Below, in pieces: positions 1 through 35,200 of a stretch of 64,000 nucleotides of DNA. Made by a program: the position numbers and the translations under genes. The stretch is from Sphaerodactylus townsendi (Eukaryota). Position 1 is the first letter of the stretch, and every line of letters starts with the position of its first letter. The notes under the pieces are model-generated. The model was given only the letters and a program-made list of their open reading frames with translations, did not search any database and was not told where the DNA came from. The DNA lies in NCBI RefSeq assembly GCF_021028975.2, contig NC_059432.1, positions 36,332,001 to 36,396,000 on the forward strand, read 5' to 3'.

Positions 1-3000
1 GAAAGTGATCTAGTAGACACCGGCCCCTGCCTCATACACATCTGTTTTCCTTCTCTTATTCCACAGTGCTACAGGGACTGTCCCTACCATGCATTACACT
101 AACAGTCGGGCGTGAGAACCATGTTCAAGGTTTGGACCTAGAGAAGGACAAACATCAAGAAAAACAGGTTCTGACTAACAACAATATGCAGGCACACTAT
201 TGAGGTCAATATTAAGAAGGAGTTTTGTTTAAAGGAGAATTATATTCAAAGGTGATGAAAAGCAGTTTGCTTGGAGCAGCAGATTCTGGAAAGGGTTTTG
301 TTTTTTACTGTCCCTAGCCAAAGTTTCAGAGATTTTCCAAACAATACTAAGCAAAGGCTTAGGGTCCTTTTCCCCCCTTGCATGATCCTCATGTAAGTCT
401 GTTATAGCACGTTATCTGGCCTACAGAAGATGAGATACCAGCTCCTGGCACATGTGCTGAACAGCAGCAATGCCAGACTATTTTGGTTAGCACCCAGAGC
501 TGGTTCTCTGCCCACGAGGAACCCTGAGGCGCTGGTGGGGCAGCTAGTGCTGGAAAGAAGAGAGAAGATGGAAGGCTTGGCATATACCTATCATTGTCCT
601 TTGGACTCATGCAGCTGCCAGGTGGATCCTAGGAAAACCCTTGAGGCGTGGCTGCTCTCTGGAACTGTGCTTGCTCATAATGTATCTGCCCAAGTACAAC
701 ACTCCTCTCTTCATCAACTTTGGTTTATTGGCACAGCAACATCTTCAGTACCTTTTTCTCCTTTTTTTGTACTTGAGCCAAGAAGGCTGCACATCCCATT
801 AGTGGTGAAAGAAAATGCTGCGCTAAGGAAGAACTTTCTTTGCAACAAAACTTTATTTTTTGTGACTCTTTCTTAACTAAAAGGAGCTCTTTTAAACCGA
901 GCTATTACACACCGTAAGTAAAAATACAACTTTTTAATTTATTCGAAAGAGTTATGAATTGTTGAGAAAGAAGCATGCAGTCTTTTAAAAGCTAAGAAAG
1001 GTGAATAGATCCATGACTTGGCAAAGCATGTTGTGTGTATGTCCCTTCACTGTTTATAAAAGGTACTGCTTGAAGGACTCCCACATCTGAATAAAAATAC
1101 AGTCCAATCCATAGGGCTCCAACATGGCGCTGCTGTCATGCCACCGTGCTGCCTCCAGAGAGCTTACAGGTGGCATGGGGAGGCAGCAAACTTCAGGAAG
1201 TCCCAAGCTGCATGAAAGCTCTCCATAGGGTAAAATGGATTTATATCACCATTTCAGGAGGCATAAGTCCGAGGCCTGCCCTGGGGGCATTACTGGCTCA
1301 AAAGCCTGGTGGAACGTCCCTAGCTCCTTTCCCAGCTATGCTGGCACACAGTTCTGCAAAACCGCAGACTCTTCAGGGTTGGGTGCCGTGGAGCTCCGGC
1401 CGCCTGCCCATCTCCCCATTTGCCCTCCCCATCAGAGAAAGTACCGCTTATGCCAGTGGGGTTGGCAAACATGCTGGTGCAGCCCCACACTGACTCCACA
1501 AGCTGATTCCCATCCCCACCCCAGACAAGACTGCCCTTCAATATTTTAATTTTTAAAAAAACTAAGGACCACAATAAAATGGGCATTGAGGAGACACTGT
1601 ATCATCTCATGACTTCACAGATCACATAAACTAGCTAACATTTCTACATGTTCCATAGTAGGTTCACAATTACAAATAGAATCATTCAATAAGGGTGGGA
1701 GAGTGCGACAGAAAGGGAATGCGACATATTATGATAGCTCTAGTGCTGATGTTCTCATTCTGATGTTCTCATTCAAAAAGTGTACAGAGGTGAGGGAAAG
1801 TGAGAAAGTGGTTTTGACTTTTGCCTTCCAGCACTCTTTAGGTACAGAAGTTGATTTTCAAATGCTAAAGGTTCTCCCAAATAAAGATGATTTACAATAC
1901 TTACAAATTGTTCCAATACATTAAACATGCCCAAAACGTATCATATTATTTACAGCTAAAATTTATTCTGAGGTATGTGTTTTCAAAATGACAGTTCATC
2001 AGGTTTTTGTTACTGATGTCAAAAGAACTGAACTCCTGAAAACTGTTCGAAACATATGTGAGGAGAACTTCATTAACATGGATTTTATTTTTAATACTGT
2101 TGAGAAATGCTGTTGAGAAAGCCAAATTTGAAGGGAAAAAAACTATTCAAACTTTTACTCATGCATTATGTTTGAACAAAAATGTTTCCTTTTAAGACAC
2201 CTACATCTGTTTCAAATTGGCATCCCTATGTGAAGATATTAGCTGTCGCTATAATGGGGATATAATCTCTCACACATTTGTAAGTGTGTATAAATATGTA
2301 AACTCTGGGGTTATGACAGCTGAACCACAGGGAATGACTGTTTTGCTCAGGACAAGCCAAAAGTTATTTGGGTTCATTTTAATCTTTCACAACCTAAACT
2401 CTCTCAGAGGGCAAGCTGTTTTTCTCAAAACTGGACCCTGAGGTAAATTCTTAGCGATGCCTGGTCTTGTTACATTCATGAGTAACCCCATATATATATT
2501 AGGACTTCAAATGAATTTAGGACTACATATGGGGCGGGGAGGGGGCAGATGTATGCTGATGGGAAGTGAGTATACAAGACTCCTGGCTCTGCGAGAACAA
2601 TCGGGATAAGGTTTCAATCCCATATTTTTCAAGTCCAGCATTAAAAAGTTTTAAAGAAATGGTCTAAACAGTAGTGAGGATGGTAAGATTAGACACAGAA
2701 CGCATCATTTATACCTTAGAAATTCTGAATATAGACACAAAGAAATTGAGTTTCACTGTAGGGCCTACTTTCTCATAATTAAAGAGTAAACAGGAACACT
2801 GGCAAATGAACCGTCTTTTTGCGTTTACAGCTTGAAAAGAAGCCGTTTGGCAGACACTCAAGTCTCCAAAGGGCAAGGGTTCTGGCCAAGTTGTTCCTGC
2901 ATAGCCCGTTTACCCTGAACACAGAGTCCTTTTAGACAAAACGACAAACAACAGCAGAGGTAAAAGTTGGGTGGATTAGAAGTTGTACATCATTCAGATT

Positions 3001-10585: not shown

Positions 10586-13481
10586 CGTACGTAACTCTAG
10601 TTAGAATGGCTAATATAACAATGGCTAATATAACAATGCTAATACAACAATTTATTTCAAGTAATTTACTCAGCAGTTTAAGAGTTTGAAGAAGATTTAC
10701 ACATAATTATCTTTCAGATGTTTTAATCCTATAAAATTTTGAGACAGAATCTCCAAATATTCACACACAAAAAGGGGATCCAAGACTGCTCCCAATAAAA
10801 TTCAAATTTGATGTAAACTTTAATCAGCTTCAAAGCAAACACTGAATAAATACAGACATCAGTAATTATTTAATCATTATTTCTGGCTGTCTTGTGTTGC
10901 TCCCATGAAACATTTACATAGCATACAATATTCTCCTGAACTTACTGTTGTGGCTTCAATTCAGCCACAATAATTCAATCCCTCTCTTCATTCCAAGCCA
11001 CAAGACAATTTGCTTGGGGTGAAGAAGCAAGAGGAGAAGGCTCCCAACTTAGAATATAAAAGCCACAAGCACGTGTAAGACGGCTTGTATCACAACTTGT
11101 GAGCATACACGTTTCCAGTGAGCAGGAAATTCTGTATTCCTTTCCTAACTGAGCTATCTTCTTAATGTAAATGTGATCTTTTGATGCAGTATGTCCCACT
11201 CCATTTATTTATTTATTTAGAGCCATCAAGTCACAGCTGACTTATACCAGCCCTGTAGGGCTTTTAGTGCAAAAGATGTTCAGAGGAGGTTTGCCATTGC
11301 AGAAGTTTAGGCATTTTGAAAGTAAGCCTGAGCTCAAGTTACTAAACTTTCCCTCTTGTTTTCCTACAGCCCGGAAACCACACAGCACCCAAGTTTCCCT
11401 CTTGTTGTTCTGAATATGAGGAGGGGAGCCCTAGGAATATTTAGAAGTCATATGTTCTAACCATTTTTAATTTTCAGATAAAAAGAATGGCATTCATCTC
11501 CCTTTTAAGATATATCAACATTTCTATAGTAATATTGGGCAAATGATAACCTTGGTAGCACGTTATCCATGGAATAATAGCTGATGGCCAATTACTAAAT
11601 GAGTATTACGTTAACAGAAATGATGGAACCTGGCAAAAGAGCCCATTTCTTCTGGTTCTTAAAAGAGTTTCACTTCAAGATCTTTGCCCTGATTTCTGGT
11701 GACTGTAAAAGGAACACTTCCATCCAACATGGTAAGGCTCCTTCACAAGGATTGGCCCGTTACTATGCTGCAGAGACAGGATAAACCAAGACATTTCCTA
11801 CGCAACAGGGCTGTCCACATAGGAAATATGAACACATCTTGAAACAGACCCAAGTAGTTCTCCTAAATACTAAAGCTTTGTAGTCAGCTATCATGCCTGT
11901 TACATTTATTATTTGTGGCAGAAAGCACCAGCATACGCTGCCCTGTTCTTGCTAATCTCACACACTGTCATGAAATCACACAGAGGGAGTAAGCTGTTGT
12001 TGAGATAACTGGCTTCCATTAGTAAGCATGTGATTGGCAGGACGATAAAGTCTTTTCGCTCACAGGTCAGCTACTTTTTAAAAAGAGGGCAAACCTGCTG
12101 ATCCATCTTTTAGCTGCAGTCTCTCACTGAGCCCCAATTCTCTTGCCATTTAGCTTTGATATGGTTCAAGCTTCTCCCCTTGTATCAGCCTCTACCTGTC
12201 ATCAGCTCCTCTGTACTGAACAGCAAATATCAGGAGTTTGACCTCAGGGCACAGTCCGGGTGGGCAGGTAAGACCTGACCACCGGACTCACTTCCTTATC
12301 TTTCATATCCTGCAATTCATGGAACGGTATCAAATTCAAACTGAAAAACAGAAGCATGACCTCTTATGAGAACTTTCTGAAAAAAGACACTGCTGCCTTT
12401 CTAAGTAGGCTTGAAAAGAACTGTCATCTGCTGTATTAGGAAAGAAATGGATCATAAAAAAAGGAGAAAGGAGAAAAGAGCCCTAAATCCTTATTAAATG
12501 TCGCTCTTTATAAAGGATTCGCATCACCACGATGAGTGGCTGGTAAGGCAAGAAAAAAGGGGGCAGATAGTTATGTTCTGCACCCAGAAGTGCAATAAAT
12601 AAAGTGGAGTTGAATGGGATTTCACTATTATTATGTACCTGGAATGCACTTAGAATTCTAGCTAGCCGACACTTAGAAACACAGAAATTATTATATTTAG
12701 TACAGGCACACAATTCTCTCAACGTGTTAATTAAGAATTATCACTGCAATCTACCTCACAAAACAGTTGCGAGAATGAGATAGGCAAAAATCACAATATC
12801 ATCTATTTGATAATAAAAATTTGATAATAATCAAATTTTCTAATAGGAAGGGATTCAAACGGTAAATCCCAAGTAAGGAACGCGAAGGCTCCTGCTCCTA
12901 CCTGCCTAAGAGATCTAGTATAAACAATCTCAAGTAACATTTCAGTCTTTAAAAAATGTTTAGGACAGATTATATTCTAGAGAGTAAAGGTTGTTTTAAT
13001 GCTGGAGCGAGTTAATTTTAACCTTGAAAATATTTTTTTTAAAATCACATCCAATGGTCACTTTTAAACTCTTCCTTACCAGTTATCTTATCTACACACT
13101 TATTGACACCTATCACCACACATGTCTATAGTGAACGTTTCACAAAAACATTGGAATCATCTTCTAGTCTAGTTGGTATAATAGCACAATTATTCCAGTT
13201 CACAGCTGTATAAATATAAATATGCAAACATTCGTCACTGAGCCGCTATGCAATATGCAACCTTTTGCTCGTAGAAATAATAGACTTTCAGCAATGGAAT
13301 ATTTGCTTTCTGCGAAGTTCTCCAGAAACTACAGCGAATGTCCAGGAAAGACTGAAATAACAATTTTGTTTCCTATTTTGAACAAAAATACTATCAGAGC
13401 CTTTAAAGTGCTTTCATCACACAATTCTACTGTTATTGTTATCCATCAAAACATAATTTCACCTGCATTTTCAACGGAAAG

Positions 13482-16873: not shown

Positions 16874-19800
16874 CTGTTAAACAAACAAATAGTAACAAGT
16901 CATTTTGAGTCAGAAGTCAAAAGTCTTGTCTGTTATTGTATAGATTATTAAAATGATTTAGGTTACTAGCACTTTCTAGAAAAAAAATTAATACCACAGA
17001 TTCACCGACACACATCCCAATGTTCTGGCATTGCATTGTGTATGCACAGAGGTCATGTGTCCCCAGGGTAGTATGTAATAACAACTTTGTGGAGGAAGGA
17101 ATTGTCTGAAGGCGAATGTTTATCCAACTATTTCAAACAATACCAGTTCCAAGGCTGTCACTTTGTTTCTTCAATTTTTTTTTCCAAGAACAAAACAAGA
17201 AAATCAGCTAGACGGTTGTCCTTTGTCTACTTCAACCGGGAGGGTAAGTTCTTTCCTTCTGGTGAGTTTTTCTTCACCAAAATTGACATTCTACTGATTC
17301 TTCTAAGTGAGAGTCTCCGTCTTGCAGTATAAGTGTGAGTTTCTGTCTTCACTAGCTTTGCCATCATTAATAAATAATAGTAATGATATCTTGGTCAGTG
17401 GTAAACAGAAACGGGGTAGGCCAATGACTCACTGGTTGGAAACCATTAAGAGGGACATGGGCCTGAACATCAACCAATTGAAAGAAGTTGTGGCAAACAG
17501 GGAAGAATGGAGGCAACTGGTTTACAGAGTATCCAAGAGTCGGACACTACTAAACCGATAAAGAAGAGAAGAGGGAATGATACCTTGTGGTTTGATAACA
17601 GGATTGAGATGACATAACTGCAGGTCTTCAGGAATGTAGGTTTCAGTTATCCAACTAATTTGAATTAAAAACATCCCCAATTTCTGAAACTTTAGGGCAG
17701 TTCTATTCTGAAGTATTCCCACAACCCTTCCCCTGTTGATCAGTCCCCGTCCTTGCAAAGGGGAACATTATATCAGGGATAAAATATCACCAGACCAGAA
17801 TCTTTTATGACCACTCCCTTAAATATACATATATTAATGGGGACTGCAGGGCTTGTCCACTGACTTCCTGAGGAGCTCACTCCAAATCTGGCTATAACCT
17901 GGATAAGGAACCTCATCAGGCTGAAAAATGATACTGCACACAAGAGATCATTCCCAGAGCTGAACTGCGTACAGAGAAGACTTTCAAACACAGCAGCTGT
18001 GTGAAATTATATATACTTTTGTCATTATATCGGCAAGTCTTTTAAATCCTTGGGCCTGCGTCCAGGTTAAATCTGGGGTTGGAAGCAAGAAACAACCCCT
18101 TAGTTTGTGGTCTGGGCTACAGTTTGTGAAAAAAGAAGAAAATGCCACAAAACTGGCATTTTCTTTTACATTCAGGTTCAAAAACAAGCATACAAGCATA
18201 CAAAAACAAGCATACAATTGGCCATGCTGGAAGGGGCTGATGGGAATTGTAGTCCATGAACTTCTGGAGAGCCTCAGGTTGCAGACCCCTGGTCTAAACA
18301 GCTAAATGAAAATAGAGAAGGAATATCAATCTACACCAGGGGTGTCCAACTCTGGCACTTCAGATGTTAATGGACTACAATTTCCATCAGCCCCTGCTTA
18401 TGGAAATTGTAGTCCATTAACATCTGAAGTGCCAGAGTTGGACACCCCTGGTCTACGTTTTTTAATGATTTTATGGCAATGGAATTCTAATCTCTGAAAC
18501 CTCCAGATTGTTAACTTGATTGCCCAGCGGTCTGGAGAAATGGGCAGCTGAAGCTCTTCATGGTATGGAGGTAACTAATACCCAATTAAGTTTCTATTAA
18601 AGGGGAGTGGTATTTTATTTCTCCGTGCAATTGGAAACCCTAATTGCCAAAGACGGAACACTGATAAAAATGCACATTGTTAATACTTAGTTCCTCAAAT
18701 ACTACAATGCTCAAGGATGGTATTTTCCAAGGTGACTAGTAAAGGCACAAATTATCTTTAGTTCACTGAATTGTTGGTTTTTCTCTAACTGGACATTTTC
18801 ATAATCTAAAACATAAATTTCTGTTCATGTTTCAATTAAACAGCAGATTATGTCAATGGACAACTAAGGAGGATAGGATTGTATCTGAGTGAATGACAGG
18901 TTTCTAAAGAAAGATTCCTGGCCTACAATTATCAACCCAAGTACCTACTGTGATATCTGTCAGTCAATCAGGCCTAAAAAGGGCACCTTAAATGAAATAA
19001 ACTGTATCTTTTCCTACCAGTTCCAGTGAGACATTTACATTGTAGAGCAACATTCTAACCAACAAAAGCAAGTCCGCCAACTTTAGTCTCATACTTACAT
19101 TCACACTGTATGACATCTAAATTAAACTGCTGAATCGCCCCCATGCTTATTTGTTTTAACTCATTATCCAGCAGCATCTGCATCAGGGAGGTTGAAAGAT
19201 GCTGGCAAGCGGACATGCAAGCAGTCTGTGCCACTTTCCCCTATCAAGAAAGGTAACAAGAATAAACAAGTACATAGGATCAGAATGTGTCATTGTTACC
19301 TACACTTACTAAGTTAAATGCAAAAAAAAATTGTTTTGAATGTTCCTATTACCAGCAATTAGTTTTGGTTTAGAACACAGCTTCCAAAGCAGTTGAACTT
19401 TAAAAAGTTTAGAAGGCTGTAACCCTGTTTCATATTGCACTATTAAACCTTTAAACCAATACCCAAACCCTTCTAAACAGCACAAATACAAAAGGTATCA
19501 TAAATACGTGTTATTTGTTACATTTGTAAATATGGCGCAAAAGCAATTTAAACTGACACATTACATACTTCAACGTCACAGAGCAGAAAACACATGCTTA
19601 TGGATTATCAACAACATGGACATTCTGAAACACTACATTCTACCTTCATATATTGGAACAATTCTACTACTTTTTGCCACTTCGATTTGAATCTATAAAC
19701 TTCTCTATTATCTGAGAGAACCACTCTAAAAATCACATTTTCCAAGTCATATGTAGCCCTCTGCTGTTCAAAATTCACTTACATGTCAATTACTATATTT

Positions 19801-22800
19801 TCACGTAATTTGTAATAGCAGTCAGTGTGAGTGATTATTCTAAAAACAGATCAAAGCCAGCTGTGAACATGCTAACATGCCAACCTGGGAACTGACTCCA
19901 CATTTACTCAGAAGTAAGTCCTATCATGTTCAAAAAGATTTAATCCAAGTAAGCATCCATACAACTGATACCTTAGGATCACTGCTCATTAATTCAAATT
20001 TAATTTGAACGAGAGATTTCTTTTGTAGCCAGATCTGATATTTTTGTAACAAGTTACCATTTCAAAGGAAACACATTAGAAAAAAGATGTTGCCATTAAT
20101 GCAGCTAATTCAAGAGTTAGAGCATTATAGCTGTTTTTATTTAGAAATAACATCTATTTAGAAATAACAATGGTATATATTCTTTGATACAATAAATATT
20201 AAACTTCAAAAGGAGAGGAAGGACTGTGCCAAAGGAGAGCAGATCCCAATATTCATTACATATGAAAGTTGCTGGGTACTTTTTGCAGGCAACACATTTT
20301 GCCCTCAACTGTGTTCAATTAAACCAGGGGCCTGCAACCTGTGGCTCTCCAGATGTTCATGAACTACAATTCCCATCAGCCCCTGCCAGCATGGCCAATT
20401 GGTCATGCTGGCAGGGGCTGATGGGAATTGTAGTTTATGAACATCAGGAGAGCCGCAGGTTGCAGACCCCTGAATTAAACCAAACATATTTACAGTCAGT
20501 CAGTACTACAGTCAGTACTACAAAATTCCTCCTGGTCCCCCCCTCCCCTCCAATGTCTACCTTGTATGTTGCAATATGTTCACATTTGTGAAAGGAAGTT
20601 CCATAGACCTATCTGATTAATGGGTATCTTGTAACAAAATTTTAAAAACTGTTCTGAAGCCAATGCATTTGACAGGAACAGAACAAGTGTCAACAAATAA
20701 GGCAAGAAACAAAGCACAGCCAGCATGCTCAGATGTCTCCCAAACCCACTGGTAATTACACTGGGAGACAGGCAAGGATATTCGCCAAACAGAACAATAT
20801 CAATATGAATGGGGAAAAGAAAGGAAAGAGGGAAGCGGGGAGGGGGGGAGAGAAGGGAGAACAAATCAATTAACTTAATTCAATTATAACGTAGCAGATT
20901 TAAGACACTTAATGGAAATGTCATTTTGATTTAATGGAACAACTGCATTTTGGTTTCATGCAGTGCTTCATCAAATCAGCTCCGTGTCCTATTTTTTGTG
21001 CCACTGTAATGTAATAACAGTAAGCAGATTAATTGAGTTCCCAAGATCAAAATGTTTTAAACGTCCAATTCCATCCCACATGTAAACATGTCGTAGACAG
21101 CACTGCTGTGCAATATTCCCTTTCACCTTATTCACCAAACCTATGCGTTCAAGCAGTTTAAAGCTGGCATATCAATAGGTCTGGAGCAAAAAGTAATGAT
21201 TACAACAGAGTCAATATGAAAGTGAATTTATCTGCCTCCTTTTGTTAGTTTTCATTCAAATACTTTACACGTTTGTTATAAGTGATTGTACAAATGCCGA
21301 CACCCTAAAATTCAACACAACTGCTTTCAACTATGCACTCCGACTGCAGGCTGATTGCTGTCAGGGCTCAGTCAAAGAAAAGCAAAAGGAAGGGAAAGAA
21401 ACAGAATCGTTTAAAGTCTCTGGTTTACATTTTAGAGCAGGGCGAAGAAGCAAGTCTGAGCTTTAAACTGCACCTGAAATTGTTCTTATTAAGCTTACTG
21501 TTACCAAAAGCTTTTCAAAGACATCCTTAACAAAATATACGCTTTTCCAAGCTGAAAGTGTACAAAACCCAATTTGTGCTTCATGCGATACCCATTCAAA
21601 TTCACATTCATCAGTAAAGCGCTGTTTATAGTGAGTCAAACGGTTTGTTACCACTGCTTCCTGTTTCTCTTAAATACATTTTTTTCAAGGGTGTGTAAGA
21701 ACACAACGATCATCTGTTAAAACAGTGAATTAAAATTGTTCTGCTGTTTCTAAAACCCTCTTTCACTATTGGCTAGCGCCAGAATACTGTTTAACTACAT
21801 CAGTTAAACATCAATTAAACTGGGTAAAACCAGTTTTGTTAAATTCGTCTGAAGTACTTTACACCTACTAACAATTTTTGCCTTCGTTTGTCAAATTAAA
21901 CGCATCCATTCCAATACACGTATTTTGTATTCCAACTCGGCAAAGCTGAAGAAATAAGGATTCTTTTATACATATATAAAAAGGAACACCTGCTAGGAGT
22001 TAGGCATCTACATTTTACCCACCCTTCCACATTTGCTGAAATACAAGTTTGCAAAAAGAGAAAACCCTTAGACAAACTTCTTATATTTCAAAGGAGTTTG
22101 CAAAAGAGAATCTGCTGACATGTTAAATCCTTTCTGTAGTATCCAAAAGCTTTTCTCTTAAGAACAATTGCTGTAAAGAGACGTTTGGCTCCTAGGAAAT
22201 TCCCAAAGGGTCAGCCATATGCATCCTTCCACGGCACCTTCACGGTGCAGCTTTCTAGACCCATGCTAGCTGTCTCAAAAGCAGCTTTCNNNNNNNNNNN
22301 NNNNNNNNNNNNNNNNNNNNNNNNNNNNNNNNNNNNNNNNNNNNNNNNNNNNNNNNNNNNNNNNNNNNNNNNNNNNNNNNNNNNNNNNNNNNNNNNNNNN
22401 NNNNNNNNNNNNNNNNNNNNNNNNNNNNNNNNNNNNNNNNNNNNNNNNNNNNNNNNNNNNNNNNNNNNNNNNNNNNNNNNNNNNNGGCTGTGCCAATCAA
22501 GGACAGCATGAGACGGCATTTGGAAGAATCAGTAAGAAACCTCTTTCTTTAAGTAGCCTACGTGGGCTTTTGATTGACAGCTTCTGAATATCGCTTGCGG
22601 AACACTACCGCCTTTTATCCAATAGTTCCTCACTGCAAGCTGTGAAATACGGCTTTTACTGCCAATCACAGGAACAATAAGACAGCCCCCCAAGCAAACA
22701 GGAAACAACAAAAGTTGTCTGTTAGATTCAAAAGTCTAGTTTTATAATTGAACAATACTGAAGCATGAATTAAGTAGGTTTTATTTTAATACATTCAGTC

Positions 22801-25800: not shown

Positions 25801-28800
25801 CATGTATATTCTTAAGTACATGAATTTTATTTAGTCCTTCAAGTAACATATGTGCTCCCGTACATAATTTGGCACAATATAGAACCAGTTTGACTTCCAG
25901 ATACTTTTTACATTCTGTTTTTATTTTTCTGTTGAAGCTCTGATTTCCTAAAATGCTCTATTGTATGAAACATGGCTATCAGGTGAAAAACATGCTGCGT
26001 GCAAATGAAAATTCTAAAATGAGAGAGTTTTCCCAACCCAGTTTTCCCAAAAGCCAGGAATTCTATTTTAAAAGCAGCAATTTATTTATTATAATGCAAA
26101 TATTTGTGTTGGACTAAAGTAAACTTCTTAAAATAAGTTGATGACCTGAAAATAATTGGGGCATGAATCCTTTAAAGCAATCCATCATCTTTTTTTAAGA
26201 CATACATTTGGGTGCAGACATTCTCCTAACTTCAAAAAGTATGTTTTTGAAAGAGGCTAGGAAACTTTCACCAGCTCTTTATTCTCAGCCACTATTTGTC
26301 CATTTTAACCCTATTTCGTATGCAGATCTCATAGCTGCATTTTGACACCTGACCTCACATCCAAGAGGTCTTATGTCTTCTTTGAATGATCTCATTTCAG
26401 ATGCAATGCATGCCCTATCATGTTTCTATGAGCCTTTAAAAGGTTCCTTCTGCCTTGATGTCCAAAAGACCAAGGTTAGTCTTCAACTTGGATTCTGCAT
26501 GCAGCTACACAACTTAGCAGCGAGTGTTGATCAAATCGAAAAGAGTACTTTTAATAATTCACTCCGTACTGAAGCAATAAGCCTGCAGGCAGTTCATAGT
26601 TTAAGTTTTCCACGTGCATGCTTTTTTCTAGCACTTGCGTCTACTTACCGACATAGCTGCATGGTCATTGTTGTTATTCTGAGAAGGAAACCAGTCAGGC
26701 AATCAAAACAAAACAAAAATTAAAAAGCACTGTCAATATCAAACAGCATTGGGGGAGCAATCAGAAAGGGAATGTGGTCTTAAGAAAACAAGCAATAAGC
26801 CTGCCAATTAGCTTTACTTCCAAAATCCTGAGTGGTGAAAGTTACACTTATATTAAGAACAAAATTCACTTTTTCCAGCTTACGGACATAAGGTTCTTGA
26901 GACAGAGTACCAAGATAAAATCATGCAACAAAACAGTCAAAATAAAAATAAATCCAATGTGCCTTAATGCAACAGAAAGCTTTGGTAAAGTGAAACAGAA
27001 CTTCTGTTTGAAGTTACAAACCAACCAGATACACATTTTAAAGGATTAACTGATATCAATTCTCCTGTAAGTCATAATAACAAAGCACAGTACTAGTGAA
27101 AGAGTCAGGAGAATAGCTTATTCTACATAAGCAGTATGTCTCCAAAGTCATTCTGAAAACACTTAGCAGAAGAATTATTAGAAAAGGTTTTGGATCAAGT
27201 GCAATTAACATAGGCCGGTGATCCGCAGCCCCGCAGAAATGTGACGGTTACGCAGCAGTCGCGATGGACAGCGTGACTGCCCTGATGTCCTGCCCGTCCC
27301 CATCTGTCAGTGCCTCCCCTCCCAGCTACTGTCAGGCCCAGTGCATGGGTCTGGGAAAGGTGCTTGGCCATGCAGGGAAAGCACCAGGGACGAGCGATAA
27401 TGTGTGTGTGTGGGGGAAAAGGTGACCCAGGCGTCTGGCAGTCGCCAAAAGAGTGGTTTTGCTGCTGAATAATGGCCGCCTTCGCTACCGTTTACGCTTC
27501 ACGACGGGCGAATAAAGACTGCGCTATACGTAACGCCTCGCTTATGGCTCTTTACCGTTGCCACGACGTCATATTTCGCCCGTGCGGAAACGGCCATAGT
27601 AATTCCAAATACTATGAATGGGACTCAACATACTGTGGGTAGTCTTCCACTCATGCATATAGATATAAGCTCCCGCTTTCTAGCTGAAAGGTCTCTCAAC
27701 CAACCAACCCCCCCCCACACACACACACACACACACACAGAGGAAGGTTCTTCCAGAGTGGTTCTCCATGCAGAATTGGGAGACGGGTATTCTGTTTTCA
27801 TGTATATGCAGAGACACTTTTATTTCACACACAGGGAATGGAAGGGGGGCAGGGAATTGGATCCTGGCCATTATCATTAGCCAGTTATTTAGTTCCTTTG
27901 TTGAAAATCCATGTGTGAATTTTTTGTATCTATTCAAGTTACAGCAAGTATTATCTACAAAAATATTAACACTAAATTGATTAGAGCAGTTCTTTTTTTA
28001 AAAAAGCTAGATGTTGCCTCTGTCATATGTTTACACTGAAGTTCTTATCAACTGATGAACCTAACAAACAATGCACAAAACAAACATTTCTGGGAAGAAA
28101 CACACGACAGGAAAACTGTTGGTACCACAGTAGTTAAGAGGAGTCTTATACCTTTATTAGAAAAGCTCATACAACACAGCTATGTAATTAAATGTGGGTG
28201 TTCTTTGTGGCTTAATATATATATACTTGTCTTCCACAGAACACTAAGGAACAGAAACGTTTTTGAAGTTACATCATATAAACTACACAGAAAGTGAACA
28301 TTTGTGGGTAAACACAGAAACCACATACTACAAATACTGCTTCTTCGACTGACTCTCTTTGACTTTTCATCTTACTCAAGTGACAAAATTGCTGCACATT
28401 TTAAAAGACACAGATGTAACATGTGAAAAGTGTGAAAAGTCCCCCTGCTGTCTTACAGCAAAATTCTGCTTTATGGTTAAACTGACTCTTTTCTGAAATA
28501 AGAATATGTGGTGGAAAGTGCTGTTATGCCACAGCTAACTTACAGCAACCCTACAGGGTTTTCAAGGCTAGAACCGTTCAAAGGTGGTTTGCCACTGCCT
28601 GCCTCTGTGTAACAATACTGGGCTTCCTTGGTGGTCTCCCATCCAACTATGGCCAACTTTGCTTAGCTTCCAAGATGTGACGAGAGTGAGCGATACCCAT
28701 TCCTCACTGAAAGATGACTATGCGGTCGTGATTCCTTCAGCGGAAGTTAAATGTGTACGCAACCCCGTGTCAGAGAAGTGCAGCTTCTCTTTTTAGATTA

Positions 28801-29227: not shown

Positions 29228-32200
29228 GCATTTAATAGACCGCCCTATCCCCGAAGGGCTCAGGGTGGTGTACAGTAAAACCAATAGAAAACAATAAGAC
29301 ATAGTGTGCAAAGGCAAAAGTGCATTAAAATCCATTAAAACAGTAGCAACATCACACTTAATTAGCCGATTTTAAAAGAGGCGTCCGAATCACAAACACT
29401 GCATTGCAGCTAAAGGAAGATCCAGGAAGATTAATGGTGAATTAATGGTGGTTTAATCCTGGCATCTTTCCATGAGAAAGGGCGTAGACTGGGCCATCCA
29501 GGTCAAGGCACACTAATAATACAGCCAACCTCAAACAAAACTGACTAGGGAAGTGTCAAACCTACTACAGCAGTCAAAATTTGGTAAACATTTCCCCCCT
29601 ATAGTCAGAAGGCCTGGGAACTTGAGGTTCAATTCTTAACATGTTTGCTGGAAGTGAATATTTCATTATTCCCAGTGCAACATAATTTTAAATGTGTGAT
29701 TAGAATTTGGTGGCTTTAAAAGGAACATTGTGCTGAGAGTATGCTTGGCACAGAACAGTATGTGATGCTAGTACTTTTGCTTTCTGGCAGACTTTAATGT
29801 TAAGGCTAAATTTCAAGTTGTTACTCTTCCTATAATTTATACACAAAGATGGCTAACTACATCAAGAATAGATGAAAGCCTGTAGTGCATGCTGCCATAG
29901 CCAAATCTATCCTGAAAGCAGATGACAACAAATGATAAATTATCTATTGTACAACACAAGATGCTTTCAGGTTTCTAGCCAGTGCTTTTAAAGGCTATGT
30001 CCTCAGTCTTATTTTTATCCCCAGGATATTGAGCAGACTTTGGGTTCTCTGTCTGCCCACAGGGGCAATTCTGAGTCTTGGATCACATCAAAGGCTGAGC
30101 TTTGAACTGCATTAATATAGCAACTATTCTTCATAGAAAATGTATATACCATCCTAAGTGCTAGAAGAAAGTGTCAAGTACACTAGAATATTACAGCCAT
30201 AGTTAATCAGGAAATATAAATACACAGGGCCTGGTCTGACAGAGGGAAGAATTAACTGAATTTCTTCCCAGCAGCATGTCGAGTTTCTTCTCTACTTTTT
30301 GATGGGTGGGTTTTATGGTATTGTACCCCACTGGGGTTCCTGTCCTCCCCAGGCTCTGTCCCCAAACCTCCATGAGTTTTCCAGCCTGGATTTGGCTACC
30401 CTCCCCCCCACCCCCACCATTCCCTGTAAGTGGCTGAGGGCACCCAGCAATACAATAGTTACCAGATGGAGGGCTTTCCCCCCCCCCATCACTGTCACAA
30501 AGGAAGGAGGACATGAGAAGATAGCAGGTAGTTGAAAAAAAGAGAACAATTCCAAAGCGAGAGAAGCCATAAGTTAGAGATGGCCTACAACTAGTGGTGG
30601 GATTCAGCAGGTTCGCACCACTTTGGCAGAACCAGTTGTTAAAATGCCTCTTGGGAACAACCTCTTGTTAAATTATTTAAATCCCACCACCGGAACCAGT
30701 TGTTAAATTATTTGAATCCCACCACTGCGACCCACTTTCAGAGGTTTCACAAACCCTTTTGGGTCCAGAGCCACAGGCTGGGAAACATTGCTCTAATCTG
30801 TCCTGTAGTATTTTTTAAGTGTCACTGTAATTGCCTAAGGAGTGTTGGAAGAGTTCAGGCTAATTGTAAGCTGGGCATCTGCCAGTACTTGCAGAAATTG
30901 TTATGACCCAGGGATAGATGCTGGTTTCCCAAAGCAATTTTCTTCAGGTTTCTCTTTTTCCTTCAATCCCAGTCACTTCTGCGGATACAGGATATTTCCT
31001 AATTTGCACACACACACAAAGCTGCTTTTGATGGAAACCTCCTTAACTTACCCACCAAGCTCCAAACACTAAACTTCCAGCTGTTCCCATCAGCCCATGT
31101 TCTGCTCTTCTCAGAACAAAGACAACACACACAGAGACAGAGTTTTGCAAGCTTCTCCATGCTTTGAGCACATTCAGAGCTTGATCTGCATTTGATGGAT
31201 GGAAACCAGACTGGCGGGGCGGGGGGGGAATGGAAAACTCAGATTTTGCACCAGGCTACATTTTCCCTAGATACGCCTCTGATTGTAAATGGGATGCCAC
31301 CAGTTCAGACTGCTACTTGGGGGAATTATATCTTTAATGTTCTAATCTAGACCAGCGGTTCTCAACATGTGGGTCGGGACCCCTTTGGGGGTCGAATGAC
31401 CCTTTCACAGGGGTTGTCTAAGACTCTCTGCATCAGTGTTCTCCATCTGTTAAATGGATAAATGTTAGGGTTGGGGGTCACCACAACATGAGGAACTGTA
31501 TTAAAGGGTTGCGGAATTAGGAAGGTTGAGAACCACTGTTCTAGACAAAAGCCATAGTCTACACCAGGCTAACACTTTTTGGGAATCAGAACTGTGCAAA
31601 TAACAAACATTTATTTAGATCAGTCTAGCTCTCCAGGGATGCAACAGATCCCAAGATCTTTTCTCATGTTGTCCTCCGTACTAGCACTCTCTTCTGGCCT
31701 CAGAATAGTTTAACCCCAGCACTGCCATGCCTGCCTAGAGTAAAAGCACATGGACTGGGAGATTTCAGTGGGGAGGGGAAGTGGGAGGAATCCCTTTCTC
31801 CCCCTCCCACTTCTATTAGCAGAGCTACAGTGATAAAAACACCAGAAAGGACCATTTTGACCTCTGCCCCCTCCCCAAACTGCAGCTATATGGGTAGAAA
31901 GGACTGCTGGGCCAAGAGAAAAAGGGGGTCCGTGGCATGGCCAGTCTTTCTAATGATGAACTGCTGGATCCAGCCCATGGTCCCTGTGTGATTTACTGTG
32001 TGATTACAGCACTGCGAAACTTACTTACACCACTATGATGTTTCTAGAGCAGAAAGCACAGGCTACGTCCTTTTGTTATTGTGATGGATTTACTTCTGAA
32101 AAAAACCCTCTCTTAAAGCAAACATATTTTTTGCATTTTTTATATAAAACAGAACTTATAATTTTTATTTAGACTACAGATGGAAAGGGTTTATACCTTG

Positions 32201-35200
32201 ATGAATGATTCACAAGGAAAACAGTAAATACACAGATCTGTTCCCTGCAGCACGTGTAATATAGCCAAAATGCTCCTCTTAGCACTACTGAGGCTAGGTG
32301 TGCAACTGCCAAGACTACTGCCCATTTATTTTGTTCTGACAACTTCAACTAAAAGCAGAAAACTATTAGTTTTTTTACATGGACTTAATGAATTTCTTAA
32401 TTTATAGCACGATACTATAGCCCTTTTCTGCACCTCTTCCAATTACATGAGATCACTTTTTTAAGGTGGGACTATCAGAACATTATCCAGTTTTTCAAGT
32501 ACGGCCATACAACAGGTGTATACAAGAGCATTACACTACCAGTATTATCAATCAATTTTCTAAGAATACCCAACAGAATTTGCCTTTTACCACCGCAACC
32601 TACTCAGTCAACATTTTACCTGACCTGTGTATCATGACCATGTTAGTCAACATTTTGCAGTTCGTATGTAAGGGCAGTTCGTATGTAAGGGCAGGATTTC
32701 TTGGCAAAAATGTGAATCACTGTATACATACTGAGCCCAATTGGCCACTTTAAATGTGGTGTGAGAATACACTGGACTGCAAATAATGTATAGATACTGA
32801 GCCTAAAAACATTTGGCAGTCACCAGAAAAGGTGTTGGCAGGACCCCTACTTTAGGACAACTCCACAGCTGTTTTAGTGTGGGAAGTAAGGACACAGCTA
32901 GTGTCACACAAACCAAGAATACATTCCTTATTGTTCAGTGGGAAGGACTCTTTCTCAGCAAGGTCAGAGATAACATATAAAGCATGGGTTTCAAACTTAT
33001 GGCCCTCCAGCTATTCATGGACTATATTTCCCATCAGCCCCTGCCAACATGGCCAATTGGCAGAGCTGATGAGAATCGTAGTCCATGAGCATCTGCAGGG
33101 CCATAGGTTAGAGATCCCTGAAGTAAAGTCTTCAATGTGAGCAAGCCCTGTGACAAAGGATAACAAAGTTGGGAGTTCTAGTTCTAAGCTGGAGGATTTT
33201 TTCTGGGGCTAAGGTCCCCACAACTGCCCTGGCCATGGCTGCATATGTAGCAATTCTCATCTAGCAAGGTATTAGGTTGCATTAAACTCATAGTGAAGAC
33301 ATATCCCTGGTGAATTAAATTGGTTGATATATTAAGCCTAGCACAAACAAGAGACAAAGGAAATTTAAGATCTGTGTTTTGTGCCACAGCATATTATATA
33401 ATTAAATATTTGTAACAAACCTCCAAAGTATTCCTTGCTCAAATCCTTCATTGTAGTACTACTTCATTGTAGTACTACTCAGAATTAACTCAAGTATTCT
33501 ACGTAAGACAAGAAAACAGACTACACTGTCACAGAGAATGGACATAATATTTGCTTTGAAAGCACCTTGGGGGAAATAGAAAAAGCTGTTACGTTGCAGC
33601 TGATTTATGGTAACTGTATAGGAGTTTCAAGGCAAGAGACAGAGGTGGTTTGTCGCTACCTGCCTCTGTAAGCACCTATATCTTAAATGAAGTAAACTTT
33701 AAATTTTGAATAAAGATCCAGCCAGACAAACTACCAACTACAATGTAAGAGACCATCCCTATGAACCTGAATGTTAAGGAGATCTAATCTACCCTTCAAG
33801 GTTTTAATACATACACACATATATTTCATGTGGGCTACTGCCACTGTCTATGGCAGTGGGTCTCAACCTGGGGGTCGGGACGCCTTTGGGGGTTGAACGA
33901 CTCTTTCATAGGGGTCGCCTAAGACTCTCTGCATCAGTGGTCTCCATCTGTAAAATGGATAAATGTTAGGGTTGGGAGTCACCACAACATGAGGAACTGT
34001 ATTAAAGGGTTGCGGCATTAGGAAGGTTGAAAACCACTGGTCTATGATCTGGATCTTGCTTATTCTCATTAATCTAAAGCAGTGGTTCTCAACCTGGGGG
34101 TCAGGACCTCTTTGGGGTTGGGAGTCACCACAAACATGGACCCCTTTGGGGTTGGGAGTCACCACAACATGAAGAACTGTATTAAAGGGTTGCGGCATTA
34201 GGAAGGTTGAGAACCACTGATCTAAAGTACTGAGGAAGCTATATAAAAGCTTACTCACAGAAGCTGTATTCTTCAAGAGCCAGGTTGCTTTCAATAGGTT
34301 AAAAGTATCCTGGAAATATTACCCTATCAGGAAGCAATCAGCATAATCAAGAACCTCTTCACACGGTTGGAAGCTTCAGAACTCTCTGTGTCCAAACACA
34401 GAGGTAACAAGTCCATTTCTTAGTCATGGTCAAAAAACTGGTAAAAGGCCAAGTGCTGAAAGACCTGTCCCTTGGTTTAAAAAAATCCTGTCCCCCTTTC
34501 TTATCATTGTTAAGATAGTATTATATCTGCATTAATGCTAATCAGTATAAGTTTTAAAACCAGGATTTCAAACTCTAGTTTGTAAATCCTAGTACAAGTT
34601 AATCCTGGTGAGTTTCTGTCCAGGTACATTACACACAGTTAACAATGTCAAAGGAAGAGACAGATTACAAGGGGGAGAAGTGTGATCCTGCAAATTTGTA
34701 GCTCACTCCTGTTCCCTTAACTAAAGATAAACAGGGTGGTTATTGCTTTTATCTGCTACATCAAATCATCCTTGCTTTGCACATACCCAGACAAATGAAT
34801 CTACGATCACCTACAGTACATACTTACAGGCAAGTGAGTAAACACCTGAAAGGTGCTTCTCAAGAAGTTAATCAGATCCATTAAATAGCCACTGGCTCTC
34901 CCGTCTGGTTCAGTCATTGACCAGTCATAATCAGCAAGCTGAATGAACTCATCAATCTTCTGGTTGAGCTTGGTATAAATCTCCCCTTCCGCAGCATGTC
35001 TTGCATCCTGAATGGAGAAAAAAGAGACGGTAAGCGTAGTTCAAAATGTTACTGACACAGAGATAATTCCTACAAACGTTAGGAAAGACTCCATTTGACC
35101 CAAGACAAGAAGAAGGAAAAACCCATTAATGATATTATGTGATCCATATTGTAATACATTGCTTGAAATTAGTCACAATACTATGATAAACAAATTTTAA

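Follow-up and report, generated by a model that had tools for sequence, protein, structure and literature searches.

A 30-nucleotide EXOC6 microexon in Sphaerodactylus townsendi and its conserved intronic flanks

The DNA analysed here, called the window below, is a stretch of 64,000 nucleotides (nt) of Sphaerodactylus townsendi (contig NC_059432.1, positions 36,332,001 to 36,396,000), whose minus strand carries exons of EXOC6 (also Sec15-like 1), the gene for a subunit of the vesicle-tethering exocyst complex. Inside one intron of this gene lies a 30-nt microexon encoding the ten residues NNNNDHAAMS, which is very probably orthologous to an alternative cassette exon deeply conserved in vertebrate EXOC6. 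We describe the exon and its splice sites, the public proteins and genomes in which it recurs, and the elements of the downstream flank that may govern its inclusion.

The microexon and its host intron

The microexon and the two exons that enclose it are located as follows.

34828..35007, minus strand: upstream constitutive EXOC6 exon of 60 codons (DARHAAEG...FQVFTHLP, then gtaagt), matching EXOC6-type fragments with E 3.6e-31
26679..26706, minus strand: 3' splice site region ttgattgcctgactggtttccttctcag, with a branch-like CTGAC, a pyrimidine tract, cag, and a UGC at -23, from the sequence
26649..26678, minus strand: cassette microexon, phase 0-0, NNNNDHAAMS, from the sequence, its translation, the occurrence of this peptide in over 200 public EXOC6 proteins, and DNA identity
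26643..26648, minus strand: 5' splice site GTAAGT, from the sequence; GTAAGT in five species and GTGAGT in the pipefish
19099..19240, minus strand: downstream constitutive EXOC6 exon (GKVAQTACMSAC...IQCE), from the sequence and comparison

Read directly on the minus strand, positions 26706..26643 run from ttgattgcctgactggtttccttctcag through the exon itself, AATAACAACAATGACCATGCAGCTATGTCG, to gtaagt (gtaagtag at the donor). The 30 nt of the exon (26678..26649) are preceded by cag and translate in frame into 10 amino acids, and the A of the branch-like CTGAC at 26698-26694 lies 17 nt upstream. Both splice sites are strong; the 3' splice site region is near-identical in skink and chicken and looser in fish. 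The host intron, which extends from the exon ending in FTHLP to the exon beginning with GKVAQ, is phase 0 at both ends, and the 30-nt insert preserves the frame. The acceptor of the downstream exon reads ttgatag followed by GGGAAAGTGGCACAG, the first codons being GGG AAA GTG. A preliminary description of this DNA had proposed a hidden phase-0 microexon with this peptide, the CTGAC and a consensus donor, placed in a phase-0 FTHLP/GKVAQ intron of EXOC6; the exon, its signals and the phase are all as described, both junctions falling between codons. Four public sequencing runs were found to contain the locus, all of DNA type, with no RNA run among them. DNA contigs from two runs of this organism agree exactly with the window over 26350-26850, and contigs of a related organism differ from it there at only three positions, all of them intronic (26546, 26564 and 26775).

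The splice-site picture taken by itself is suggestive of an exon. A mechanical scan of the 64 kilobases for a Y-rich tract, YAG, 3-60 nt and GTRAGT returns eight sites on the gene strand, at least three of which are real EXOC6 exon ends, and two on the opposite strand. Several of the sites have no other support, including those at 32029-32043, 19783-19839 and 12292-12340, and splice signals alone are therefore insufficient; it is the homology evidence that decides. The neighbouring 15-nt candidate at 32029-32043 (minus strand, encoding KHHSG) has good splice signals, occurs in none of the more than 200 isoforms examined, where the ten residues are the sole insert between THLP and GKVAQ, and lies in a part of the intron without gecko-skink conservation; by these comparisons it is probably a chance pseudo-exon.

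EXOC6 proteins with and without the insert

A search with the upstream exon against 1.84 billion representative proteins separates two paralogue types, one with the INFLRSTFQVFTHLP of the window and the other with IAFLRSTFAVFTHLP, which is named EXOC6B in public records. Since the window exon is of the INFLRSTFQVFTHLP type and not of the IAFLRSTFAVFTHLP type, the gene is, by sequence, EXOC6 and not EXOC6B, as the preliminary description had it. The best protein match to the window exons is the EXOC6 of Sphaerodactylus townsendi itself (X2).

Among the matches to the upstream exon is an older EXOC6 model of Chelonia mydas that contains THLP-NNNNDHAAMS, and 40 amino acids spanning the insert junction of this model served as a second query. 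In its best 119 matches the insert directly follows THLP without exception, and exactly 10 residues separate THLP from GKVAQ in 115 of them, the other four being models that stop short of GKVAQ. Besides NNNNDHAAMS, these matches contain NNNNDHASMS (many teleosts), SNNNDHAAMS (the second copy of a sturgeon) and NNTNDHAAMS (a catfish). A third query, a marsupial EXOC6 isoform, adds snakes (NNNNDYAAMS), a caecilian (SNTNDHAAMS) and frogs (NNSNDHAAMS, after FTNLP), as well as a newt, the axolotl and many lizards. The variants of placental mammals are TNSNDHAAMS in cetaceans, TNSSDHAAMS in cattle and seal, TNSSDHAAMT in dog and TNNSDHAAMS in colugo. In total, THLP-NNNNDHA[AS]MS-GKVAQ or a near variant is present in more than 200 public EXOC6 proteins, so that the occurrence of DHAAMSGKVAQ among vertebrate isoforms, raised in the preliminary description, is amply documented. 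The fish lineages bearing the insert are teleosts, eel, sturgeon, gar and bichir, and the tetrapods are frogs, salamanders, a caecilian, turtles, lizards, snakes, birds, a marsupial and placental mammals. Judged from these sequences, the microexon is real and ancient and extends across bony vertebrates.

Isoforms that differ by the insert are annotated within single species. In Anolis carolinensis, X1 (829 amino acids) contains it and X3 (819) does not, and corresponding pairs are found in Lacerta agilis (X1/X3), Pantherophis guttatus (X1/X4) and Eublepharis macularius (X3/X2). The pairwise comparison of such isoforms gives the 10 amino acids as the sole difference, and isoforms skipping the insert are annotated in birds too. 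The exon is thus a cassette exon, and the earlier proposal of a genuine alternative in-frame exon stands. The same records dispose of the word "hidden": the microexon is already annotated in public gene models (RefSeq, UniProt or Ensembl-derived) of well over 100 vertebrates, Sphaerodactylus townsendi included, and is not new.

The site of the insert can be placed in the protein. An alignment with the C-terminal domain of Drosophila Sec15 (PDB 2A2F) spans it with E 9e-83 and has a gap exactly at the insert. Wu et al. reportedly found in 2005 that this Drosophila domain, the one in the PDB 2A2F structure, binds Rab11. The Sphaerodactylus X1 isoform was modelled with AlphaFold2 from a 40-sequence alignment, giving a mean predicted local distance difference test (pLDDT) score of 82.5; in the model, the insert residues 656-665 belong to a low-confidence loop, 652-662, between the helices 635-651 and 663-688, with pLDDT below 50 for 657-663. 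According to this model, two helices of the Sec15 C-terminal domain are connected by a polar, flexible, disordered surface loop, which the insert likely lengthens.

Some peculiarities of the public records may be mentioned here. In the Chelonia mydas model, the microexon is followed by another copy of the 60-residue exon (THLP-NNNNDHAAMS-DARHAAEG...THLP-GKVAQ), which looks like an assembly or annotation duplication. In Sphaerodactylus and Anolis there are isoform pairs with and without one Q after ELDK (junction ELDK/Q, at about 47120 / 45462 in the window), as is typical of a NAGNAG-type alternative acceptor. Two Podarcis records named "cytochrome P450 26C1 isoform X1" (631 amino acids) fall in a 90% cluster with EXOC6 proteins, which suggests read-through or fused models of the adjoining EXOC6 and CYP26C1.

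Conservation of the exon and of its flanks

Five loci were compared with the gecko: those of Lerista edwardsae (skink), Gallus gallus (chicken), Acipenser ruthenus (sterlet), Anguilla anguilla (eel) and Syngnathus scovelli (pipefish). Orthologous DNA with AG/GT splice sites is found in all five. The nucleotide identity of the microexon to the gecko is 30/30 in skink and chicken, 29/30 in sterlet, 28/30 in pipefish and 27/30 in eel. As a measure of synonymous conservation, we counted the identical codons among those that encode the same amino acid as in the gecko.

Chicken: microexon 9/9, upstream exon 27/53, downstream exon 27/42
Sterlet: microexon 8/9, upstream exon 26/53, downstream exon 18/40
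Pipefish: microexon 8/8, upstream exon 17/54, downstream exon 16/41

Conservation at synonymous sites is far higher in the microexon than in the flanking exons, and the microexon is therefore constrained as RNA as well as protein. The microexon and its immediate flanks are shown to be under nucleotide-level constraint well past the needs of the protein. The identity between gecko and Lerista edwardsae around the microexon amounts to 90% over 751 nt and, per 50-column window, is mostly 88-98% (72% in one) from just upstream of the microexon to beyond +600; the remainder of the 8-kilobase upstream intron gives no gecko-skink alignment. The conserved flanks and the candidate elements within them are listed below.

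26048..26795, minus strand: conserved flanks of the microexon, about 115 nt upstream and about 600 nt downstream, from the alignment to Lerista edwardsae
26617..26621, minus strand: GCAUG, RBFOX-type motif 1, 28 nt downstream, from the sequence and comparison
26574..26600, minus strand: deeply conserved intronic block ACTATGAACTGCCTGCAGGCTTATTGC, 27 nt, +49..+75, from the six-species comparison
26498..26503, minus strand: UGCAUG, RBFOX-type motif 2, 146 nt downstream, from the sequence and comparison
26475..26480, minus strand: ACUAAC, a QKI-type or branch-point-like hexamer, +169, from the sequence and comparison
26409..26413, minus strand: GCAUG, motif 3, +236, kept in skink and lost in chicken (GTGTGCATT)

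The three downstream GCATG sites reported in the preliminary description are found on the minus strand where it had put them, at 26621-26617, 26502-26498 (TGCATG 26503-26498) and 26413-26409, that is, at +28, +146/147 and +236. Three sites in about 270 nt compare with about 0.3 expected, the window containing about 1.1 per kilobase per strand. The conservation of the sites, which that description had left to be checked, is graded. The proximal GCAUG is kept in five of the six species, at +28 in gecko, +27 in skink and chicken, +33 in eel and +56 in pipefish, the sterlet having ACAUGCAC at its place (degraded to ACAUG). The second is confined to the sauropsids, at +146 in gecko, +144 in skink and +140 in chicken, where the sequence around it is not the same in chicken as in gecko; it is not found in the three fish loci.

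The 27-nt block is better conserved than GCAUG. The block is identical in gecko, skink and chicken, has three changes in sterlet and about six in eel, and is thus present in the GCAUG-less sterlet. ACTAAY is found at +169 in gecko, +167 in skink and +163 in chicken, and is absent in the three fish (sterlet, eel and pipefish). All six species have a UGC in the 40 nt before the acceptor; the motif is short, and its position shifts (-23, -18 or -7).

Two further features of the intron were observed. An exact 15-nt direct repeat, GCAGGCTTATTGCTT, brackets the microexon (26803-26789 and 26586-26572, minus strand); the copy on the downstream side belongs to the deeply conserved block, and the one on the upstream side is not kept in skink or chicken. 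Farther downstream, conserved non-coding elements are present at 22749-21985 and 21053-20669 (minus strand). In the first, 22749-22486 and 22289-21985 adjoin an N-masked run (about 22290-22485), with identities of 82-93% to skink and 72-74% to sterlet; the second is kept in sterlet (72%) and lies within a longer skink match, 21439-20669 (69%). These elements may be enhancers rather than splicing elements.

Possible regulation of the microexon

Inclusion joins ...FQVFTHLP to NNNNDHAAMS and this to GKVAQ... in frame, and skipping yields the shorter "canonical" protein. In the mechanism that we propose, the ten-residue loop insert would tune an interaction with a partner, the fold being unchanged. 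The choice would be set by conserved intronic elements just downstream of the exon, the most recognisable of which is the GCAUG at +27..+56. RBFOX proteins follow a position rule, according to which downstream binding promotes inclusion. The conservation of GCAUG is beyond chance in most lineages, and a splicing enhancer obeying this rule is a plausible reading of it. We put at even chances that an RBFOX-type step acts through the downstream GCAUG, which would predict higher inclusion in RBFOX-expressing tissues.

Several points weigh against the proposed explanation as a whole. In sterlet, no GCAUG is found in the first 500 nt after the exon, the motif therefore not being universal, and among squamates the conservation of the motif is inseparable from that of the whole flank, which is about 95%. 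The use of the microexon in Sphaerodactylus townsendi rests, in terms of sequence, on orthology. The 30-nt exon is not listed in the zebrafish tables of neural and Srrm3/4-regulated exons, and the supplements of the mouse MicroExonator resource have no Exoc6 entry; a strong brain-specific pattern is consequently undocumented in the tables searched. No Exoc6 entry is found either in the supplements of the Snap23 muscle paper or in those of the Calhoun zebrafish paper. The sole exoc6 entry of the zebrafish tables is a 12-nt microexon, DreEX0031112 (human HsaEX0023471), which is neural-enriched and about 90% included in zebrafish brain (PMC12626424 and its supplement). By isoform comparison, this 12-nt exon inserts V[HY][KR]G after ...LLEK, near the C-terminus; it was not found in the window, where the intron after 16797 runs off the end. 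The oligodendrocyte-specific exon reported by ASCOT belongs to Exoc6b, a different gene. In the literature searched, we found nothing on this EXOC6 exon in connection with Rbfox, Srrm4, microexon or cassette splicing.

An alternative that we consider possible, at somewhat below even chances, keeps the microexon as real and assigns its inclusion mainly to SRRM3/SRRM4 acting through the upstream UGC, to QKI acting through ACUAAC, or to another factor acting on 26600-26574, with GCAUG being secondary. The UGC within 40 nt of the acceptor in all six species agrees with the first of these, but so short a motif is expected by chance in about one third of 40-nt stretches and its position moves; in addition, 30 nt exceeds the usual 3-27 nt of the SRRM4-dependent class, and the zebrafish tables that list the 12-nt exoc6 microexon do not contain this one. 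The ACUAAY that gecko, skink and chicken have in common at +163..169 would suit QKI, but ACUAAC is not found in the fish. The block, which outdoes GCAUG in conservation and is kept in the sterlet without it, is in line with another factor.

We have also considered a structural switch, in which the 3' half of the microexon and the 5' splice site would pair with the block at +49..+75, hiding the donor, and in which protein binding to the GCAUG in the loop would open the site. The model is that of a sauropsid duplex of about 20 base pairs with the ultraconserved block 45-75 nt downstream and, if true, it would account for every frozen synonymous site of the microexon. RNAalifold pairs exon columns 51-78 with block columns 135-161 (20 pairs), and the stem is present in the minimum-energy folds of gecko, skink and chicken. 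In these three species, the energy of the duplex is -18 kcal/mol, with z from -2.4 to -3.0 relative to shuffled blocks and within the top 1% of intron windows. However, the folding energies of the whole region are ordinary (z -0.3 to -1.3), and so is the pairing in sterlet, eel and pipefish (z -0.8, -0.5 and -0.1), although the block is conserved in the first two. The covariation term is +0.25, and the changes in eel break two central pairs with no compensation; the alignment comprises six sequences only, three of them nearly identical. Since stability of the duplex is limited to sauropsids and covariation is lacking, we keep the switch as an improbable idea.

That the microexon is constitutive in Sphaerodactylus townsendi, being always included and thus unregulated, is more improbable still. 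The annotated X1 and X2 of this species both include the insert, and the splice sites are strong. Against this, skipped isoforms are annotated in Eublepharis macularius (X2), lizards, snakes and birds, and long conserved intronic flanks together with frozen synonymous sites are the usual mark of regulated exons. Finally, a chance pseudo-exon, that is, unused splice-like signals around an open 30-mer, of which the unsupported scan sites named above offer similar examples, is refuted and has practically no probability left, given that the identical peptide recurs at the same junction in over 200 annotated proteins of bony vertebrates and that the DNA identity across fish and tetrapods is 27-30/30.

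A genuine 30-nt alternative exon is thus recoverable from raw sequence by splice signals and frame alone; as it is already in public gene models, it adds nothing to the catalogue. It is uncharacterised in the literature searched, in which we found no description of the effect of the loop insert, of the tissues that include it, or of the factor that reads its flank. With an identity of 30/30 between gecko and chicken and of 27-29/30 with ray-finned fish, and with a block kept as far as sterlet and eel, it is a reasonable candidate for studies of exocyst regulation.

It remains to compare the exon with known systems. Like it, the 12-nt neural exoc6 microexon is a small cassette exon of this gene that keeps the frame and contributes to the C-terminal part of the protein, but the two are distinct: the 12-nt exon lies about 115 residues closer to the C-terminus and outside the window. 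With the SRRM3/SRRM4-dependent neural microexons, the EXOC6 exon shares its shortness, frame and deep conservation, a host gene of vesicle trafficking, a predicted surface loop and perhaps the upstream UGC, which is short and shifts in position, but its 30 nt fall outside their 3-27 nt, and it is unlisted among the zebrafish neural or Srrm3/4-regulated exons. As in RBFOX-activated cassette exons, to which we liken it by sequence, there is a downstream GCAUG (27-56 nt away, in five of six lineages) and a long conserved downstream flank, and the sauropsids have a further site, UGCAUG, near +145; the sterlet differs in having lost the motif yet keeping the exon. From the annotated insert-bearing EXOC6 isoforms, which are computational gene models (Sphaerodactylus townsendi XP_048361930.1 and XP_048361931.1, Gallus gallus XP_025007365.1, Anolis carolinensis XP_008113544.2), the copy in the window shows no substantive difference, having the same gene, the same FTHLP/GKVAQ junction, the same length and phase, and the same peptide, NNNNDHAAMS.

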